Assembly: GCA_051294905.1 (NCBI GenBank)
Contig: CM119373.1
Span: 12,152,001-12,216,000 of the forward strand
Direction: 5' to 3'
Source of the DNA: Botryllus schlosseri
Lineage: Eukaryota
Length of the DNA stretch: 64,000 nucleotides
Shown here piece after piece: positions 38,388 through 55,200 of this stretch (positions are counted from its first letter, which is position 1; each line of letters begins with the position of its first letter). A model generated the notes under the pieces. That model had not been told where the DNA came from, ran no database searches, and was given only the letters and a program-made list of their open reading frames with translations. Position numbers and translations under genes: made by a program.

Positions 38388-38588
38388 CTTAAAACCATTA
38401 AAAACGGCATATGAAAACAACTAGCCTACAATACAAATATGTGCGGAAAACGCGTACTCATTAAAGACGCTGGTATTTTGCAGTACTTTCTAGTGGTTAT
38501 GTAAATCAAATTGGATTCGATATACAGAATTGAATATTGGTGTGAGATTCGATGTTGTCCAGTCCTAGCTATGATGCTGTTGTGAACA

Positions 38589-38791
38589 TGTCGTAAACTG
38601 ACTATTGCGTTGAATAACTAACTGAAGCTTTATTAAGGCAAAGGTAACCAATGTGGCTTTAAGCAACATAGAACACAACTGACAGCAGAACAGAAGAGAA
38701 GAGAATGACACGGTAACGATAAGGCGACACTGTACTGTACAACGTAACTAATCAGATGAAAGTAATTATTGCCTAATTGCGGATCACCACA
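38589..38791 (-). repeat. 3' LTR
   Basis: Matches 42531-42733; preceded on the minus strand by the PPT. Confidence 0.97.
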
Positions 38792-38843
38792 TTCTACCCC
38801 CCTTTCATTTTGTAAATTCACATAGAAGAATGACACAAAAACA

Positions 38844-40013
38844 TCAATGACTAACAAAATTACCATACCGATCCGGCTGGCGCCTAACTCTAGTTGAACG
38901 CCGAAGCTCGACGTCTAGATTTCTACTCGACTCATCTGGTGCATCCTCTGAATGGTTAGATTCTTGAGGCTCTTCATCAGATGACTTCAACTCAACGTTA
39001 CAAACTTCGCGACTTGGCTCGTGGCCATCGATATCAACAGAACAAGGTTCAGCTTGTTTCGTTTCAGGATTAGTCGATGGTGTGTCTTCTCCAGTAGGAA
39101 AACGGGCCAAATCGTTGAGTGAGACGTTTGACTCGCGGCCGTTAGGAAAACGAACACGTGCGTAAGTCGGGTTGGCTTCAAGAAGTTCGACCTCAGAACA
39201 TAGTTCGTCGCCCTTGTTTCTGACGAATTTGCGTAAGAAAACTGGCCCCGGTGTCAATAGCCAGGATGGCACGCTATTCCCCACCATACTTTTTCTTGGA
39301 AAGGAAAAAAATCGGTCATGCGGTGTTGAATTAGTTGACGTGCAAAGTAGCGATCGAACTGAATGTAGCGCATGAGGAAGGGCGTCAGCCCAACATGATT
39401 CTGAGACTCCGGTTGATTTCAAAATGAGTTTGATAGTTCGCCATAATGTTTGATTAAGGCGTTCGCACTGCGAATTTCCTGTTGGGTGGTAAGGCGTAGT
39501 GAAGCTAGTTGCAACCCCGCGAGAATGTAAATAATCCTTGACTTCCTTGGACACGAAAGCGGTGCCTCGGTCACTGTGAACGTATCCCGGAAGTCCAAAA
39601 ACTGCGAATAGTGTCGACAAACACGAAACGACGGTTAGCGCGGAAGTGTTGCGACATGGAAAGGCGAACGGAAAACGACTATATTCGTCTATGACAACGA
39701 ACATGAAAGGGGATTTGTTAGATTTCAAAGGCCCTTTGAAGTCTACGTTGATTCTTTCCCAAGGTTTCGTTGCTTTCACAAGCACTTGCGGATTGCATTT
39801 GTAAAAATTTGGTTTGATCTGAGCACAAATGCGGCAACGAGCGCAAGTCTCACGGACGTCATTTAGGGAGAACGAGAGATTTTTCGAACGAACGAAATGA
39901 TGCAGCCTTGTGACTCCTGGATGACCCAGAGTGTCGTGTATGCGATTTAGATTAGAACCCAACTCACAGGGTGAAATCGATGCGCAATACGAAGATGTGG
40001 TCCGCGAAAACAT
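38844..40013 (-). CDS. Gypsy integrase portion of pol (continuation after a 1-nt frameshift)
   Basis: HHCC (HDTLGHPG..CARCRIC) and D-D-E (NVDFKG, HSDRG, QCERLN); no chromodomain. Confidence 0.93.
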   Translation of the reverse strand: MFSRTTSSYCASISPCELGSNLNRIHDTLGHPGVTRLHHFVRSKNLSFSLNDVRETCARCRICAQIKPNFYKCNPQVLVKATKPWERINVDFKGPLKSNKSPFMFVVIDEYSRFPFAFPCRNTSALTVVSCLSTLFAVFGLPGYVHSDRGTAFVSKEVKDYLHSRGVATSFTTPYHPTGNSQCERLNQTLWRTIKLILKSTGVSESCWADALPHALHSVRSLLCTSTNSTPHDRFFSFPRKSMVGNSVPSWLLTPGPVFLRKFVRNKGDELCSEVELLEANPTYARVRFPNGRESNVSLNDLARFPTGEDTPSTNPETKQAEPCSVDIDGHEPSREVCNVELKSSDEEPQESNHSEDAPDESSRNLDVELRRSTRVRRQPDRYGNFVSH

Positions 40014-40027
40014 ATCAGCCGCAACAT

Positions 40028-42511
40028 TCAGTGCCCCGGTTTGTGTACGATATCATACGAAAATTGACCAAGTTCGACACGCCACAGCTGGATTTTGGTA
40101 TTTTTGATTTTACCTTTAGATTTGCCGTCAAACATGAACGCGACAGATCTTTGGTCAGTAACAAGAGTGAAATGTCTGCCATGTAAAAAATGAGCCCATT
40201 TACGAACTGCCGCGATAATTGAGGACGCTTCTTTCTCAACAGAGGAGTATCGTATTTCACTTGGCGATAGTGCTTTTGACATGAACGCGACCGGTCGACC
40301 GTTTTGACTGAGGATAGCTGCAATGGCTGCATTGGAAGCATCACACTCTATTGTGAACGGACTTGTCTCGTCAATCCTACCAAGAGACGCGTCAACTAAC
40401 TCGCGTTTTAAATCGTTAAATGCGATAGATGCATTTTCGGAAAGCGGAAATTTTTCGACTGAATACAAAGGACGGATTTTGTCGGAAAAGTTGGGCAACC
40501 ATTTGGCATAGTAGGCAAACATACCACACACTCGTTTTAGTTCTGGGTTGTTGCGTGGCGGCAATAAATCGATTAACGGCTTCAGTCTTTCTGGGTCCGG
40601 TTTGATCACGCCATGCGACACGCGATAACCGAGCAAGTCTATTTCCGTAGAACGGATGATCGACTTCGAATGATTGAAAGTGAGGCTGAATCGCTGAGCG
40701 GCATTGAGAAACGCGTCGAGATTTCGATCGTGGTCGTCCTTATCCATACCGCAAACAGTAATATTATCGAGATAAGCGAATGTGCCGGTGAGCTTGTTGT
40801 CTTTTATGACGTTGTCTATTATTCTTTGAAATGCCGAAACTCCGTTGGTGACTCCAAATGGCAATCGACGGTATTGGTAAAGATTTCCAGCGGCTTCGAA
40901 TGCCGTATACGGACGATCATCAGGTGATAGTGCCACTTGATAATACGCGGACTTCAGATCTAACGTACTGAAAACTTTGAAACGGGCGATGCTGTTGACT
41001 TGGTCATCGATCCTTGGTAAAGGATAGGCGTCTAGTAAGGTATACCTGTTGACCGTCTGAGAGAAGTCGATGACCATGCGCTTCTTGTGTCGACCGTCAT
41101 TTACAACAAGAACCTGTGCTCGCCAAGGCGATGAGGACGGCTCAATGATTCCTTCCTTCTCGAGTTTCGCAACTTCCGCTTTAATGAAATGTAGATCGGC
41201 TACGCTATATCTTCTGGATTTAGTGGCAATCGGTTTACAATTTGGTGTCATAAACTTGAAAATTTGCGGTGCTTCGACACACGCTTGAGCAACTCCGCAT
41301 ACACTGTACTTCTGATCTCGAGGGAGTTCCAAGGTATCTTTATCTCCGTCCATATTGAAAATGACCCGTTTATGCAAGTTCATGAAATCGAGACCAAGCA
41401 CCACATCAGCGCATAAATCTTCCATCCCTTTAAGAGGGAATTCCGTATATTTCGTTTCGTTTACAAGAATGTCCGGTCTGTAGAGTTCTTCAATCTTGCG
41501 GGAATGGGATTTAGAAGCAAATGTAACCGTAGAGGAGTACGGAGTGGATTTCAGGTCAATTTCGTTGGCGTATCCAGTGCTTATGAAGCTTTCCGCGGAA
41601 CCGGAGTCGATTAAAGCAAATGTTATGTGGCAGCCGATCTTAACCACGATTCTTGCTTTTATGAGACATTTGGGTACTCCGATGGCGCTGAAGTATGAGA
41701 TCATTGCAGTTACTGTTTTCCTGTTGTCGGTGGCCTTTCTCATGCAAACCACTTCATAATGACCTAGGACTCCACAATAGCCACACTCGCTCCGTTTCGC
41801 TGGACATTTATATCGGGAGTGGAATGACTGACCGCAAAAAAAGCACTTCCGATCAGGTTTGATTGTTTTGCTCATTGCGTTGAGTTGACTGTGAGTTTCT
41901 GTGGATGATAGTTCGACTTCGGGATTCAAAGATTTTTCCAGCGGTTCGACGCCGACAGATGAACATGGAGTGCTGCAATAGATACTAGAGCTTCGCTGGG
42001 CGAATTCTAATGAGCGGGCTTTTGAGATCGCCATTTCGAGGGTTACAGCCCCGTCACTTTCTAATAATCTCTGTCTGATAACGTTTGATCGGAGACCAGT
42101 AACGAAAGCGTCGCGGATGGACTCCTTGCGATGATCTTCCGCCGAGATAGTCTTGAATGTGCAATCTTTCGCTAGATCTGCCAAGGCGCGGGAAAATTCC
42201 TCGATCGTCTCTTCGGGCTTCTGAATACGGGTTACTAGCATGTGGCGGACGAAGATTTCGTTCTTTTGCTTGATATAAATTTTGTCGAGAAGTTCTATTG
42301 CGGTATCGTAAGTCGAACTTTCTTCAAAATAGGAATAGACAGACGACGACACGAAATTTGTTAAGATCTTCAACTTGTCGATCTGTGTATCTTGATCAAA
42401 TGATGAAAGAAAATTATCGAAGGTCTTCTTCCAATGCTTATACTGTTTTTCAGCAGAGGCGGAGTCCGGACTGATATCGAGCTTGTCTGGTTTCAGAATC
42501 CTTTGTGCCAT
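40028..42511 (-). CDS. Gypsy gag-protease-RT-RNase H polyprotein
   Basis: Two Zn knuckles (CFFCGQSFH..C; CGYCGVLGH..VC), protease LIDSGS, RT LDLKSAYYQ..LPFG..YLDN, RNase H ECDAS..EKEA..TDQ. Confidence 0.96.
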   Translation of the reverse strand: MAQRILKPDKLDISPDSASAEKQYKHWKKTFDNFLSSFDQDTQIDKLKILTNFVSSSVYSYFEESSTYDTAIELLDKIYIKQKNEIFVRHMLVTRIQKPEETIEEFSRALADLAKDCTFKTISAEDHRKESIRDAFVTGLRSNVIRQRLLESDGAVTLEMAISKARSLEFAQRSSSIYCSTPCSSVGVEPLEKSLNPEVELSSTETHSQLNAMSKTIKPDRKCFFCGQSFHSRYKCPAKRSECGYCGVLGHYEVVCMRKATDNRKTVTAMISYFSAIGVPKCLIKARIVVKIGCHITFALIDSGSAESFISTGYANEIDLKSTPYSSTVTFASKSHSRKIEELYRPDILVNETKYTEFPLKGMEDLCADVVLGLDFMNLHKRVIFNMDGDKDTLELPRDQKYSVCGVAQACVEAPQIFKFMTPNCKPIATKSRRYSVADLHFIKAEVAKLEKEGIIEPSSSPWRAQVLVVNDGRHKKRMVIDFSQTVNRYTLLDAYPLPRIDDQVNSIARFKVFSTLDLKSAYYQVALSPDDRPYTAFEAAGNLYQYRRLPFGVTNGVSAFQRIIDNVIKDNKLTGTFAYLDNITVCGMDKDDHDRNLDAFLNAAQRFSLTFNHSKSIIRSTEIDLLGYRVSHGVIKPDPERLKPLIDLLPPRNNPELKRVCGMFAYYAKWLPNFSDKIRPLYSVEKFPLSENASIAFNDLKRELVDASLGRIDETSPFTIECDASNAAIAAILSQNGRPVAFMSKALSPSEIRYSSVEKEASSIIAAVRKWAHFLHGRHFTLVTDQRSVAFMFDGKSKGKIKNTKIQLWRVELGQFSYDIVHKPGH

Positions 42512-42513
42512 AA

Positions 42514-42529
42514 TTCTATGTTGCTTAAA
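42514..42529 (-). promoter_or_regulatory. PBS-position sequence complementary to the element's own LTR (putative self-priming site)
   Basis: TTTAAGCAACATAGAA (minus strand) starts 1 nt after the 5' LTR and is the exact reverse complement of LTR 42615-42600. It does not begin with TGG as a tRNA PBS would. Confidence 0.75.
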
Positions 42530-42530
42530 T

Positions 42531-42733
42531 TGTCGTAAACTGACTATTGCGTTGAATAACTAACTGAAGCTTTATTAAGGCAAAGGTAACCAATGTGGCT
42601 TTAAGCAACATAGAACACAACTGACAGCAGAACAGAAGAGAAGAGAATGACACGGTAACGATAAGGCGACACTGTACTGTACAACGTAACTAATCAGATG
42701 AAAGTAATTATTGCCTAATTGCGGATCACCACA
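42531..42733 (-). repeat. 5' LTR
   Basis: Matches 38589-38791; on the minus strand it has an Inr-like TCAGTT (42624-42619) and AATAAA (42576-42571). Confidence 0.97.
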
Positions 42734-43602
42734 GAACATCTACAAAGGACCAAGTTGAATCAGTTGGGGAATAGGAATGGCACTGTCTAAAGAAAATTGT
42801 ATGGTGATTATGAACCTCTGACGTTGATATCTTGTCAACCTTGCAATCAGTTCAGTGGATAATCCACGACTCTTTCTCGTTCTCACGACGAGAGAGGACC
42901 GTACACGCGAACGGCCAGTTTCTAGATATTTCTGGCGGGCGAAATCGCGAAATCTAGAGCGAGAGCGATCAAACAGAAAGAAAGAAGTATCTATTCAACC
43001 GCGAACAGGGATATCTAAAACTCCGGGATGGCGGACTCTCTCGTTTTCACTCCCGGCGCCGAGCGACAGGAGGGCCACATGTTCTTTGTTCAGAGTTCAC
43101 TCTCGCTGAGTTCTTGAGTCGGACGGTTCTCGCGCGGTTAACGAGATGTTGCAGTGTTTATTTTACCTACATTTAGATCAATTTTGAGGATGTAGACTAA
43201 TATATGGTATGTGATGGATGATCAGATATCCATATTCTAGTGTGCCAGCAATACACAGTATAAATTACCGGTATTGTGCTACATTTCGTGCAACTGTTTT
43301 GATATATTATTAGTTGTCAGGAACACCTGTACTAGTGGGGCTCTTGGTTGTATTCGAAGCATGTTTAGTAGTTTATCAAGTCATTTAATTGAAAGTATAA
43401 TTCCTCATATATAAAGGCTTCCTTGTATTGCGTTAGTAGCTTGAAATCCCTGCCCAGGCAATCCATCCTATTTGTATATTTATACTAAGTTGTGTCTTTA
43501 TATGAATAACTACTACTAAGTCATTTAGCTGCCTTCCTATCGGTTCACATTATTATTTTGACTTTGTTAACCCAGGGACAATGACTATCACTGATAATTA
43601 GG

Positions 43603-44796
43603 ATGGGGTATACATGTTGCATTCCTGAATGCAGCACTGGGTACAGGTCTAGTAGTAAAACTGGTGCGACTGCTACACTGCTCAAGTTTCCACGGGACGA
43701 AAAATCTAAGGAGAAATGGATCAGGGCGATACCGAGGCAGAACTGGACACTGTCGGTGAACCACAGGGTGAGGAAGCGTAATGCATTGTTCACGCCCCTG
43801 CAGCCATCAGGAGATCATCCGGGCCTTGCATACCTGAAAGAGGCAATAATCATCTTTAAAGAATGGCAAGCATCTGGAAATATTGGACTGACTCGAGAGA
43901 CATTTATGGCGTGTATCCAGACAATGGGTGCCATTATTGACCTCACGAGTTATTTGGTGAGCAAATATGGTATTGAATACATACTCTCAGGAAAAGTGAT
44001 GTTCGATCCGATAGAAGCAAGATTTGGGATGTACCGCCAGTCAAATGGTGGCAACTTCTTCATGTCAGTGAAACAGTTGCTTTCGGCAGAGAAAAAATTT
44101 CGATGCTTAAGTTTACTCCAACAACGAGGATTGTTCATCGCTTCACGTCTCGATCAGTCTGATCATGGAAATTATCATGAGGATGATGCACCCTCTTCAT
44201 CCCAGTTCTCGTGGTTAGTTGAATACTTGAGTAATGTTGCCATTGACGAGGTGGCTGATAGTGATGCGGCTGTTTCTTTCTATGTAAGTGGTTATATTGG
44301 ACGGTCCATTACCAGGCGAAGGCATTGTGGCAAATGCAGTAATTTACTTGTTAAGAGCATTTCTGTTCCGCCACTATCTGATTCTATACCAGACAAGTAC
44401 AAATCAGTGCTGCAAATTGCAAACAGGGGTGGTCTCTCAGAACCATCTGACTATTGTTATGTCTTGACAACCCTTGCTGTCCAATATTACACAGCTCTAG
44501 CCAACAACAGTGATGTTATGAAAAAGTTCATAACCTGTCCTAATCCAAGAAGGGTTTTTGTATCTGCCATTCGCGAAATTTTGAAGTCAACTTTTCTGTG
44601 CAATCTCATATCTGTTGTATGTGAGAATGAGAAAGATCCCCATAACAATTTTGAATTGATCATGCAAACGTCATTCAACTACTTTGCAAAAAAACAGTTG
44701 AAACGCTTCAACAGCAAGACTAGTTCCAAGCTGCCCATGAGCCAAAAACATCAAAAGATCAGGAAACTTAACTCCAAGGGTTCCAGCAAATCTTAG
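43603..44796 (+). CDS. Truncated THAP domain fused in frame to the C-terminal part of a P-element transposase (397 aa)
   Basis: MGYTCCIPEC..KFP..KW..AIPR (THAP N-terminal half) joined after NHRV to LTRETF..YILSGK..DPIEARFG.YRQSNGGN and Y.SGYI..C..C..L..RGGL (P/THAP9 C-terminus). Most of the catalytic core is absent. Confidence 0.85.
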   Translation: MGYTCCIPECSTGYRSSSKTGATATLLKFPRDEKSKEKWIRAIPRQNWTLSVNHRVRKRNALFTPLQPSGDHPGLAYLKEAIIIFKEWQASGNIGLTRETFMACIQTMGAIIDLTSYLVSKYGIEYILSGKVMFDPIEARFGMYRQSNGGNFFMSVKQLLSAEKKFRCLSLLQQRGLFIASRLDQSDHGNYHEDDAPSSSQFSWLVEYLSNVAIDEVADSDAAVSFYVSGYIGRSITRRRHCGKCSNLLVKSISVPPLSDSIPDKYKSVLQIANRGGLSEPSDYCYVLTTLAVQYYTALANNSDVMKKFITCPNPRRVFVSAIREILKSTFLCNLISVVCENEKDPHNNFELIMQTSFNYFAKKQLKRFNSKTSSKLPMSQKHQKIRKLNSKGSSKS

Positions 44797-45530
44797 TGAT
44801 TTCTGGCTGTATCTGCTTTGTATGTTATTACACCTGCTCTGTATCTTCCCTCGATAAAAATACCTTGGTGTTCAGCTAGTGATTTCTGGCTGTATCTGCT
44901 TTGTATGTTATTACACCTGCTCTGTATCTTCCCTCGATAAAAATACCTTGGTGTTCAGCTAGTGATTTCTTATTCTATCTGCTCTGTATCTTGCCTTGAT
45001 TAAGTTGGTGATGTTTGGTATCTGCTGTGTCTCTACTAACCTGGATTAAAATATGTTTGTCATCAGCTAGTGATTTTCGGTTGTATATCTGCTCTGTAGC
45101 TTGTCTCGTTAAAAATACGTTTGTTTCCAGCTAGTGATTTTTACTATATCTACTCTGTAGCTAGCCTTGATTAAAATACTGGAATCTGCTGTGTATCTAA
45201 CCTGTATTAAAATGTTTGTCATCAACAAGTGACTTTTAGTTGTATCTGCTATGTACCTTGCCTTGATTAAAATACACATGCTTTCCGTTACTGATATTTA
45301 GTACATTCGTTTTCAGCTCTGTATGAGATAACCATAATGTCTGCTAGGCAGTTTTGATTTTATCTGCTCTGTGTTTTTTGGTTATATTTGCTGTGCATCT
45401 TGCCTTGAATAAAATACCCACCTTGATTAAAATACACATGTTTTCAGTTACTTATATTTGGTACATTCGTTTTTAGCTCTGTATGAGATAACCAGAATGT
45501 CTGCTAGGCAGTTATTTGAGAACCAAGAAA
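44795..45530. repeat. 83-bp tandem repeat array in the 3' part of the P element
   Basis: Two exact 83-bp units (TAGTGATTTCTGGCTGTATCTGC...GTTCAGC) followed by progressively diverged units. Confidence 0.9.
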
Positions 45531-51249: not shown

Positions 51250-54200
51250 TACTTAACCTCATCGGACGGGAGAAAGCGACAAGGCCACTTTTTAGTCTTT
51301 TCAGTGATCTATGTCGTACAGTTAGCAAAGCGCATCGCCTACAACAGCACAGCAGGAAACCCAGCCGACCGAAACCAAACCAGCTGAAAATCCAGCTCAA
51401 ACCGACACTATCGTTAAAGAAAATAAACAGAGAACAGGATAGACCATCATGAAATCACCGAAGCCGACACGCAACAACAACGCAACTAAAAGGTATCTCG
51501 AAAAGCACGAGTATGACGAAATAAAATCGCCGACCAGAAAAGCTGTAAACCTGTCAACCGAACCGATGATAACAAACACAGTTCCGAAATCGTACCTTAA
51601 ATAATAACGATGGATCGACTGTCAAAAATTACGGTAAACGTTATAACATACTAAATAGCAACACGAAAAGAACTCTAGTTTTTGACTACCTTAAGAAATC
51701 CAATGCGGATATATGCTTTCTACAAGAAACACATACCACACTGGAAACATAATCCATATTGCAAAACGAATGGAATGGCACGTCTTTTTGGAACTCATAC
51801 GACAAAACTCTGCAGGTACAGCTATATTGATTACCGCGAAAAGACGTGACATAAGAATAAAGGGATCTCATAAGGATCCAGAAGGTAGAATTATCAACGC
51901 TGACACTAAAATAGGGAACGTTAACCTACAGCTAACGAACATATACGCACACACTGACGGCGCAAAGAAAAGACCCCAATTTTATAGAATGGCCAAAAGC
52001 ACCTTTAAAGCAGCTAACAAGATTGTCGCTGGCGACTTCAACTCTGTTGAACAACCACAGTTGGACAGGGTCAATACGGTCCCGTTCAAAGATAAGAAAG
52101 ATACAGAGGCCTTGAAAGAAAGTCTGAAAATAACTGGTGTGGAAGATGCCTTTCGAACCCTGTATCCAACTAAAAAGGAATATACGTACAAGTACGGCGG
52201 TGGTGAATCACGACTTGACCGAATATATGTGTCTGAATCTATTGCTATAAAATCATGCGAGCACAGATCGTGCCCGTACTCTGACCACGATGCGGTTCTC
52301 TTGAAAGCAACTATACAAAAACGGGAAATTGGAGAAAAGATTTGGAATAACAATACAATGATCTATGAAGAGGAATCCTTTCATGATGGATTTGCATCAA
52401 AATGGAACAAATGGCAAACTCTTCACCCCATTTTATACCGTACGAAAACAGAGTGGTGGATAGCTATCAAAGACAAAATTAATACTTTAGAAATCAAACA
52501 GGCAAATAGATTAGGAAAAGAAAAGGCGACGAAACTTGATACAGAAATGAAAAATATTGACGAAATGCGAAAACAGATCGACGAAGGGAAAGACCTCGTG
52601 GAGGAATATCGTCGTGTTAAAAAGAAAATTTGGAACTTGGAAGCGGATAGCCTTCAAAAATTACAAATCCAAGCCAACATCGAAAACGAAAATAGCCTGG
52701 ACAAGATTCCGTCAATGCTCTTTGACAAAATTAGAGAAAGAAGAGAGCCCGCATATATAGACGAACTTGTGGATACTAATACATCTGATCACGCCGCGAA
52801 ACAAACAATAGCAGCAAACTTCTACCGAAACCTGTTCAACAAAAGATCGATCGATAAGCAATGCTCTGAGGACTTCCTCGCCAACATCAATGGAGCTTTA
52901 TCAGATAATCAGGTTAGTGAACTTGATTCGGAAATTACCATGACAGAGGTTCGAACGGCCGTTTTCAGCCAGCATAACTGTGTCGTACGCCTGGCGCAGA
53001 CGGGATTAGTGCTGAATTTTAGCAATCGAGCTGGGATATAATCAAACACGACCTGGTGGATATATTTAACGAACTTTATGGTGCAAATGAGATCAATCGA
53101 GAAATTCTCGAAGGCGTCGTTAAAGTAATTCACAAATCTGGGGATGGATCTGATTTGAAAAATTATCGGCCAATCACATTATTGAATGTGGATTATATAA
53201 TCTTAAGTAAAATCATCACTCGCCGTATCCAAAATTTCCTTCCTGAAATCTCCCATGGACGCCAATATGTCAAACCGCCGAACAAAAGAACAGATTTGAA
53301 TGTCATGCTCAGAGAAATTGCCGAAAATATGAAAGAGAGAAAGGAAGGAAGGCGCAATAGTATCGGTTGACTTCAAGAAAGCGTACGATTCATTATCGCA
53401 TGATTTCATGTTAAGTGTTTTAACGAAAATGGGATTTGGTGTGAAAGCCCTGGCCTACATAGAAAACGTATACAAAAACAGCACGGCGAAAATATTTATT
53501 AATGGCCGAATCGGAGACACGGTAGAGATTGGCAGGGGAATCAAGCAAGGTGATCCCATTTCCATGTTATTATTCACGTTAACTACAGAACCTCTTCTCC
53601 AGATGTTAAATAAGAAAGTCCCTGGCTATAAACTGCCTGGAATGAGGAAATGAATTCTAACGCCAGCCTATGCCGACGATATCACGCTGACAATACCACG
53701 CAGAGCAGACGCGGAGTCGTGTATTGCTATAATTAGGAAATTCACGCTGGCAAGCAACTTGGACATGAACGAATTAAAGACAAAAGGAATACAATTCGGA
53801 ACAGACAGACGGCAGAGCACTATTCTCCACGTTGAAATGGGTTGACAAAATAAACGTCATGGGAGTATCGATAAGGAAAGCGAGAAACATACAGCAATGG
53901 CGAAAGATCTACGAAGACGCGGCAAAAATATGCAGCAAAATGAGAGATCTGAAATTAAGAATCGACGAAAAGGTAATTGTGTTCCGAACAAAAATATTCC
54001 CTAAATTTTTGTATCTAGGTATGATCCGATGCCACGCGAGACAAGAAGTAAACCGAAGAAACAAATCATGACGACGCTTTTCGATAACTACGCCACAGTT
54101 GAATATGACACGATCATCAAGAACAAGATCGCATGCGGTCTTGGTCTCTTAGACATCCCAACTAAGCTCGACCTCCAGTTCATAAAACCGGCGATCAAGT

Positions 54201-55200
54201 TCTTGAAAAAATCAGAGAGCGACTACAACGAATGGACAAGAAGGGTAGACCAACAAATTGCAATAACCTTTTCAAAGTTTTTGAATTACAGACTGAACAA
54301 CGCGAGACCGCACGCCTTCGAACCGCTGCAACATTGGAAATCGATGCTGCAAGTCATAGAAAATTACCAAATAACGAATGAAGAAATACAAAAAGAAAGT
54401 ATAAGAGAAATTTACAAGAAGATAATCGCTCGCAGAAGAAGCCAAGATCCAGTACCCGTTTGGGTTAATTGGAAGAATGTAAACAGCAATACGCTAAGAC
54501 CCGTAGAACGAAACTTCAATTGGGAAGTTGGGCACAACACCCTGTACACAAAACACAGGATGTACGAAAGACTTGGTGCGCACAGCACAGAGTGTGAATT
54601 CTACAATACGGGCATTGAAAACATCAGACACCTCTTTGTCAGATGCCAAGTCACCAAAGCAATTATATCCCGACCACTGCAAGCATGGGATAAAGCGGCA
54701 AATGAATCTGCAACGCAGCCTTCAGAAAAGCTAATCGTTGGTCTGAATCAGCCTGGCAGCCAGAAAGAAGATGCACTGCTTCAAATAATTACAATCTTCA
54801 AGCAAGCGGTATGGAGAATGCGAAACAGACGCGTGTACGAATCAGTCCAGCCGAGTGTCCTCTGGTTGAAAAAGTCCATCAGTCTACGAATACAGAACAA
54901 AATCAATCAACAGAGAGATATACTCGGGCCGATCACAACAGAAACACTGGCGCAAATAAAACGAGATATTCGAGAACGAACCTAACTACTACTACACTCC
55001 GATGACAACTCGACGACAGCAGCAATAACATCGTACTAAAATTTAACGCATTTATTCTGATATATTTTTAGTTTTGAACCGTAATTTTCATGAAATTCTA
55101 ACAAACGAAAGATGATTTTCGCATCGCCTTCCGTCGAACATCGCATTAATGTAATATCTTTCGTTACAGTAATTACCCGCGTATTTTTCAACGATACGTT
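51250..55200 (+). mobile_element. Degenerate L1-clade (Tx1-like) non-LTR retrotransposon
   Basis: ORF1-like tail to ~51600, ORF2 from 51610 to 54985, then an AT-rich 3' region. Ends are approximate. Confidence 0.85.
51610..54985 (+). pseudogene. L1/Tx1 ORF2 (APE endonuclease-RT-Zn finger), multiply frameshifted
   Basis: FDYLKKSNADICFLQETH, VAGDFNSV, SRLDRIYV, SDHDAV (APE); KNYRPITLLNVDY, DFKKAYDS, GIKQGDPIS, AYADD (RT); C..ENIRHLFVRC (zf-RVT); spread over at least six frame segments. Confidence 0.92.

Follow-up and report, generated by a model that had tools for sequence, protein, structure and literature searches.

The 64,000-nucleotide (nt) stretch of the Botryllus schlosseri genome analysed here (assembly GCA_051294905.1, contig CM119373.1, positions 12,152,001 to 12,216,000; called the window below) carries on its minus strand a complete Ty3/gypsy-type long terminal repeat (LTR) retrotransposon of 4,145 bp (38589-42733), which probably starts its reverse transcription without a tRNA. 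Judging from the sequences of this element and of its relatives, we consider it, with a probability of about 80%, to be a recent insertion belonging to a large animal family of Ty3/gypsy elements that lacks a chromodomain and would be primed in the manner of Tf1, by a segment of its own RNA. The leader between the end of the 5' LTR (42531) and the gag ATG (42511) is only 19 nt long (42530-42512), and 16 of these nucleotides, making up the presumed primer binding site TTTAAGCAACATAGAA (42514-42529, minus strand), are the exact complement of a segment within the 5' LTR, the putative self-primer TTCTATGTTGCTTAAA (42600-42615, minus strand), whose 3' end is an AAA that is invariant in the family. 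The self-complementarity is a trait of the family, not a product of chance: it recurs, each time with a different sequence, in 28 distinct elements, and the two partners covary.

Covariation of the primer site and its LTR partner

Relatives of the element are plentiful, a protein search returning more than 1,000 of them at 45-51% identity and one at 71%, and the comparison drew on the closest relatives, on 80 metagenome loci and on several contigs from sequencing runs. In the 28 distinct elements (36-71% protein identity), the 11-19 nt that follow the LTR match a segment of the same element's LTR, not the corresponding segment of the others. Wherever both the LTR and the gag start are present, one pattern is shared: the LTR ends in CA, a single A follows, and the site then usually begins with TTTA, while the matched LTR segment, located 29-70 nt ahead of the LTR end, terminates in AAA and is followed by GCC or ACC. 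The window element has its single A at 42530 (minus strand), as part of a CA|A|TTT junction kept in most relatives, and its GCC, the presumed flank of a cut by ribonuclease H (RNase H), at 42597-42599 (minus strand), straight after the primer segment; alignment columns A18-A20 and C22, which belong to the AAA | GCC/ACC junction, are invariant. The closest relative (71% protein identity) possesses a 19-nt complement of another sequence, with several compensated differences from the window LTR, and intact multi-copy families linked by their cluster names to Porites and Pocillopora corals possess complements of 11 and 15 nt. In more distant, decayed copies (36-38% identity) the architecture persists, with a mismatch or a wobble pair in it, and the exceptions to the pattern are truncated 5' LTRs, chimeric contigs and copies too degraded to read. 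By a simpler measure, the longest complement between the sequence preceding gag and the sequence upstream of it reaches at least 11 nt in 31 of 41 related loci, with the same geometry, while control windows from coding regions typically yield 7-8 nt and reach 11 nt or more in only one case of 200.

Site and segment also change together, as the first-pass annotation of this stretch, made from the letters alone, had proposed to examine by aligning family members. Among 22 distinct primer/site pairs, exact runs of 12-19 nt are found with the element's own LTR, and mostly no more than 6 nt with the LTRs of other elements; over duplex positions 1-12 these pairs show neither a mismatch nor a G:U pair in 264 cells, with up to four types of pair at a single position. 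An alignment of 16 elements has 95.3% of its cells paired, compared to 69% when shuffled and 30-46% when the partner is slid, and 13 of its 16 pairs change on both sides. Its covariation score (0.671 versus 0.164) is reached in none of 500 shuffles, and RNAalifold, uninstructed, predicts the same 13-bp helix from it.

The window element considered by itself shows the same relationship. The 16-nt complement between site and LTR segment is its longest perfect inverted repeat, and in a 118-nt RNA covering both arms this helix forms the backbone of the predicted fold (-30.9 kcal/mol, z = -4.2). The only point in favor of a chance inverted repeat is that the region is AT-rich, and to this explanation we assign next to no probability: by our own arithmetic, for a leader of 19 nt and an LTR of 203 nt, a complement of 16 nt is expected with a frequency of 4 x 188 placements x 4^-16, or about 2e-7, and the 16-mer, allowing up to two mismatches, has three matches in the window versus 0.11 in shuffled sequence. 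With the recurrence in 28 elements and the covariation, chance is ruled out.

A number of peculiarities of individual copies are recorded here for completeness. The metagenome contigs L096, L097 and L001 are chimeric across copies, and the 5' LTR of L001 is cut short; GCACC is found both in L096, on the 3' side, and in L097, on the 5' side, and these two apparently represent one insertion with a 5-bp duplication. Copies L096-L100, of the family linked to Pocillopora, possess an A-rich leader of about 15-30 A with an occasional C, which differs in length between copies.

Possible routes of priming and alternative roles of the helix

The first question is whether a tRNA could occupy the site. 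The first-pass annotation had stated that a TGG-type tRNA primer binding site is missing, and this holds beyond the window: the 16-mer contains no TGG, none of the 28 distinct elements has a TGG-type site at or near the primer site, and in none of them does the site begin with a complement of a tRNA 3'-CCA. The nearest TGG in the window element is part of the gag start (A-TGG-C), at a distance of 20 nt from the LTR end and out of register with the LTR boundary, which is fixed by the 3' LTR and the target duplication. Neither the window nor any of 30 related loci has a tRNA gene that ARAGORN detects, so that there was none to compare with the site, and Rfam returned no tRNA-like or other match in the element. 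One could still propose that the site binds some other host RNA, be it a half-tRNA, a stretch from inside a tRNA or a different small RNA, and that the match to the LTR is secondary, given that internal or half-tRNA priming is known or predicted in some Ty1/copia lineages (PMC6317226). We find this very hard to accept, as a conserved host RNA would fix the sequence of the site, while the site differs at most positions among relatives, each matching its own LTR; the lack of both a 3'-CCA complement and a tRNA-like match also speaks against it. Variation of this kind, with each site tracking its own LTR, could not be brought about by a conserved host RNA.

The register of the helix is the one that self-priming would need. 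In the relatives compared, the base paired with the 3' end of the LTR segment is invariably the one located 1 nt after the LTR, which agrees with the earlier proposal that the primer 3' end lies beside the boundary of U5 (the unique 5' region), and extension of a primer paired in this way would copy U5 and the repeat region (R) exactly. The position of the polyadenylation, or poly(A), signal also bears on this. In 14 of the 28 elements the primer segment and an AATAAA or ATTAAA share exactly the same 3' end, with no further canonical hexamer beyond it; three elements have a hexamer only downstream, among them the window element, with its AATAAA candidate at 42571-42576 (minus strand), 23 nt after the segment; the remaining 11 have neither arrangement. 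The signal is thus positioned at or after the segment, which puts the latter ahead of the poly(A) site, in keeping with R, and leaves only a short remainder of R plus U5, the segment and the LTR end being 20-70 nt apart.

The overlap with the poly(A) signal may alternatively be taken to mean that the helix is a regulatory or structural RNA element, acting to mask the poly(A) signal in its 5' copy, to regulate the translation of gag, or in packaging or dimerization, and that the primer is something else. Besides the hexamer at the segment's 3' end in half of the elements, this is in line with a duplex that reaches or overlaps the gag ATG in several relatives and with a predicted fold dominated by the helix. 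We nevertheless regard it as improbable. A functional primer site must directly follow U5, and the 19-nt leader offers nothing else, TGG included; the segment 3' end pairs 1 nt after the LTR, a register that priming requires and masking does not; and the lack of G:U pairs in the 264 core cells fits copying better than selection for pairing alone. A regulatory role can, moreover, coexist with priming: the same helix may also mask the 5' copy of the poly(A) signal, a secondary role that is no rival to priming.

Self-priming of the Tf1 type could proceed in this family as follows. Transcription would start at or before the primer segment, so that the 12-19-nt LTR segment would be situated in R, at the genomic RNA's 5' end or close to it, and would fold back onto the site one base after U5. 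RNase H would then cut where the duplexed segment ends on its 3' side, between the conserved AAA and the GCC or ACC, and the freed 3' OH would prime minus-strand synthesis through the short remaining U5 and R, as has been shown experimentally for Tf1. In Tf1, the pairing with the site involves the first 11 bases, and the RNase H cut falls between base 11 and base 12 (PMC7175516; PMC4600332). The primer site would presumably be re-copied from the primer in each cycle, during plus-strand synthesis, and such re-copying would explain why the match is of perfect Watson-Crick type and why its core contains no G:U pairs. The tRNA primer sites of retroviruses are likewise re-copied from the primer in plus-strand synthesis.

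A number of observations weigh against self-priming, or against parts of the scheme just outlined. Some lineages carry an inherited mismatch at duplex position 14, a poor fit with complete re-copying of the site. Many copies have a GCCTA...TAGGC hairpin at the conserved GCC or ACC that follows the primer segment (42585-42599, minus strand, in the window element), but the stems of hairpins beside the primer are no longer than those in shuffled sequences, while Tf1 requires such a stem-loop. The first-pass annotation had placed the 5' end of the genomic RNA at an initiator (Inr)-like TCAGTT (42619-42624, minus strand), the A of which does lie 7 nt before the segment, but the motif, whose role is unproven, is not conserved even in the closest relative, and the predicted 5' end thus amounts to an assumption; no shared promoter motif is seen upstream of the LTR segment. 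The sequencing-run contigs reveal no transcript ends, all of them being either unitigs with 30-nt overlaps at their ends, in which LTR and body are collapsed together, or fragments that lack a poly(A) tail.

Anatomy, neighborhood and lineage of the element

The positions given in the first-pass annotation for the 19-nt leader, the 16-nt complement, AATAAA and TCAGTT were all reproduced, and the rest of the element has the makings of a complete copy. Its completeness is evident from an identical LTR pair with TG...CA ends (on the minus strand), a target duplication and the order of its domains. The 5' LTR (42531-42733, minus strand) and the 3' LTR (38589-38791, minus strand) are 203 nt each and 100% identical, the latter carrying the second copy of the primer segment (38658-38673, minus strand); the element is flanked by a 5-bp target-site duplication, TGTTC in the sense of the element (42734-42738 on its 5' side, 38584-38588 on its 3' side), and a polypurine tract, GAAAGGGGGGTAGAA (38792-38806, minus strand), adjoins the 3' LTR. 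These features, the identical LTRs, the target duplication and the polypurine tract, demonstrate that the copy in the window is a recent product of a working reverse-transcription cycle. Neither a second copy of the element nor a solo LTR is present within the 64-kb window.

The gag-pol gene (38844-42511, minus strand) encodes gag, protease, reverse transcriptase, RNase H and integrase. The gag part includes two CCHC zinc knuckles in its nucleocapsid portion (41744-41845), and Pfam recognizes an aspartic protease (41378-41641), a reverse transcriptase (40619-41089) with YLDN as its motif C, RNase H (40061-40438) and the zinc-binding (H2C2) domain of integrase (39807-39950), followed by the integrase catalytic core (39483-39770), after which neither a chromodomain nor a Tf2-type SH3 domain is found (all on the minus strand). 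This order of Pfam domains, protease, reverse transcriptase, RNase H, integrase, is that of Ty3/gypsy elements (Metaviridae), and the best relative of known structure for the reverse transcriptase-RNase H region is Ty3 (E = 8e-48). The ATG at 42511 is the conserved gag start, as the alignments of relatives to the window protein begin at residues 1-4.

Most relatives encode gag-pol as a single open reading frame (ORF) of about 1,180-1,235 amino acids, and the window gene has one -1 frame change, between the RNase H and integrase domains, with no internal stop codons and no slippery heptamer at the break. A programmed frameshift was considered and dropped for lack of such a heptamer, a plain mutation or a sequencing error being simpler. 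This copy, with its frame change, may have relied on proteins supplied by other copies, or the change may stem from an error in the assembly. In the alignment, the window gene's upstream reading frame ends within three columns of the end of P0109 (824 residues, 13 cluster members), and two further relatives, P0007 and P0028, end within 30 columns of it; the RNase H/integrase junction may be a recurrent weak spot. A separate observation concerns motif C of the reverse transcriptase: among 172 long relatives (from the set P0001-P0232), 130 have Y-x-D-N (YLDN in 91, YVDN in 20, YIDN in 19) and 42 have YLDD. Replacement of the second Asp of YxDD, as in the window copy, is unusual in the reverse transcriptase of elements that look active.

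The neighborhood of the element includes further ORFs that resemble those of mobile elements (43603-44796, 51713-53041 and 54029-54985, all on the plus strand), one with a THAP domain and the others with endonuclease and zf-RVT domains typical of non-LTR retrotransposons. Repeats are found at 44794-44959 and 45261-45513, in the form of two exact tandem copies of an 83-nt unit and of two 93-nt copies, 94% alike, with a 160-nt spacing.

The suggestion of the first-pass annotation that a self-priming-like site occurs here in an element devoid of a chromodomain is backed by the covariation and by the domain scans. No match to Chromo was detected in the window integrase at E values up to 1, among 26 relatives, or among the domains listed in precomputed form for 120 hits of the protein search, and no Tf2-type SH3 domain in any of these three sets. 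Membership in the chromoviruses is therefore excluded by their defining domain, which does not in itself place the reverse transcriptase. The other part of that suggestion, that gag is Mag-like, fared less well. The two CCHC knuckles are there, invariant in the gag of the family, and the Mag label, which has these knuckles as its sole basis, is not established and may serve as a lead. The gag matches the general retrotransposon gag family only weakly, and its profile, when compared with solved structures, matches only two-knuckle retroviral nucleocapsids. The protein search and the cluster look-up returned only names of the "hypothetical" or "uncharacterized" kind, and no polyprotein of Tf1, Tf2, sushi-ichi, Mag, SURL or Cigr-1. 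A search of solved structures returned Ty3, a caulimovirus and retroviruses, and an AlphaFold model (mean predicted local distance difference test score, pLDDT, 76.6), compared with a library of viral structures, retrieved caulimoviruses and retroviruses, with no Metaviridae references returned.

These data bear on a further alternative, that self-priming is real and the family is an offshoot of the Tf1/sushi group that lost its chromodomain, which would make this a known mechanism in a known group. The architecture is that of Tf1, down to the single gag-pol ORF of the relatives, and chromodomains have been both gained and lost among Ty3/gypsy clades (PMC13524379). We consider such a placement unlikely, though it deserves to be taken seriously: neither the window integrase nor any of the 26 relatives has a Chromo or a Tf2-type SH3 domain, gag has two CCHC knuckles and a weak match to the general retrotransposon gag family, and Tf1, Tf2 and sushi proteins are absent among the named search matches.

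The named relatives come from corals (Pocillopora, Acropora, Montipora, Porites), an anemone (Actinostola), a jellyfish (Sanderia) and a sea cucumber, and are mostly cnidarian. Relatives from an isopod, Armadillidium vulgare (P0116, P0127-P0132), are flagged UNVERIFIED_CONTAM by their source, and the apparent spread across phyla may be due in part to contamination. One coral-linked family is represented by an identical protein of 1,192 residues on 14 contigs from many samples, suggesting recent activity of that family.

Comparison with known self-priming systems

To our knowledge, self-priming has been demonstrated experimentally only for elements of fission yeasts. The mechanism itself is known, and it has already been predicted outside the Tf1/sushi group, for Tcn1 and for the plant copia lineage TAR (PMC6317226). 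Our literature search, with its thin subscription coverage, returned no report of self-priming in an animal element lacking a chromodomain, and this is weak evidence. An animal family showing the signature, with clear covariation, would extend the range over which the mechanism is known, and it is relevant to the proposal of an ancestral LTR element primed by a hairpin, with priming by tRNA arising later (PMC3601003). There are practical implications as well. Elements of this kind would be invisible to annotation pipelines that demand a tRNA primer site, and in one survey of Ty3/gypsy elements from animals, no tRNA site was found for 361 out of 1,512 (PMC13524379). They would also escape those host defenses that employ tRNA fragments against the tRNA primer site (PMC7472051).

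The closest parallels are Tf1 and Tf2 of Schizosaccharomyces pombe and Tj1 of S. japonicus, which likewise possess, right after the 5' LTR, a site complementary to the LTR, and no tRNA site, and Tf1 also shares the single gag-pol ORF with the relatives of the window element. These three, however, are fungal and carry a chromodomain in integrase, while the family described here carries none, has a duplex of 11-19 bp, a gag with two CCHC knuckles and a primer segment that often includes the poly(A) hexamer, and the 5' end of its RNA is a presumed one. A wider circle of self-primers, including sushi-ichi and other vertebrate members of Tf1/sushi, as well as Maggy, Skippy, Cft-1, Boty, Grasshopper and Afut1, has been predicted from complementarity between the LTR and the site (PMC6934838, citing Lin and Levin 1997; PMC6317226). 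The sushi-ichi/Maggy group consists of chromoviruses of fungi and vertebrates, in contrast to the present family, with its lack of a chromodomain and its mainly cnidarian named hosts.

Outside Tf1/sushi, self-priming has been predicted for the Tcn1 clade (mosses, club-mosses and fungi) and for the TAR lineage of Ty1/copia (Houba and Osr-1, of plants), from a complement of at least 10 bp located 0-5 bp after the 5' LTR (PMC6317226); by the same measure, the complement is 16 nt in the window element and 11-19 nt in the 28 distinct elements, 1 nt after the LTR. Neither of the two is an animal element, Tcn1 having chromodomains and plant or fungal hosts, and TAR belonging to another superfamily, but the case of TAR shows that the trait recurs outside Tf1/sushi.

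Among animal elements, the Mag lineage, including the Steamer-like elements (the C-clade of Mag), is composed of compact Ty3/gypsy elements with LTRs of about 180-200 bp, one gag-pol ORF, zinc knuckles and no chromodomain (PMC11046912; PMC6238403). The present family shares with it the compactness, the short LTRs, the single ORF, the knuckles and the absence of a chromodomain; the single ORF of about 1,200 amino acids in the relatives and the two-knuckle nucleocapsid agree with this lead from the literature, which is not a strict definition of the lineage. A tRNA-Asn primer site has been reported for one Steamer-like element, MchSLE1 (PMC11046912), whereas the window family has no tRNA site. 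Ty3 of Saccharomyces cerevisiae has the same order of domains and is the best relative of known structure in the reverse transcriptase-RNase H region. Ty3 is primed by a tRNA.

Taken against these systems, it is tempting, if still somewhat less than probable, to see here a compact (about 4 kb) Ty3/gypsy family without a chromodomain that represents an unrecognized self-primer, abundant and apparently still active in reef corals, anemones and jellyfish, belonging to a lineage separate from Tf1/sushi, and with a self-primer that doubles, in many members, as the poly(A) signal. If this is true, then self-priming either arose more than once within Ty3/gypsy or is an ancestral trait that has been retained in animals.
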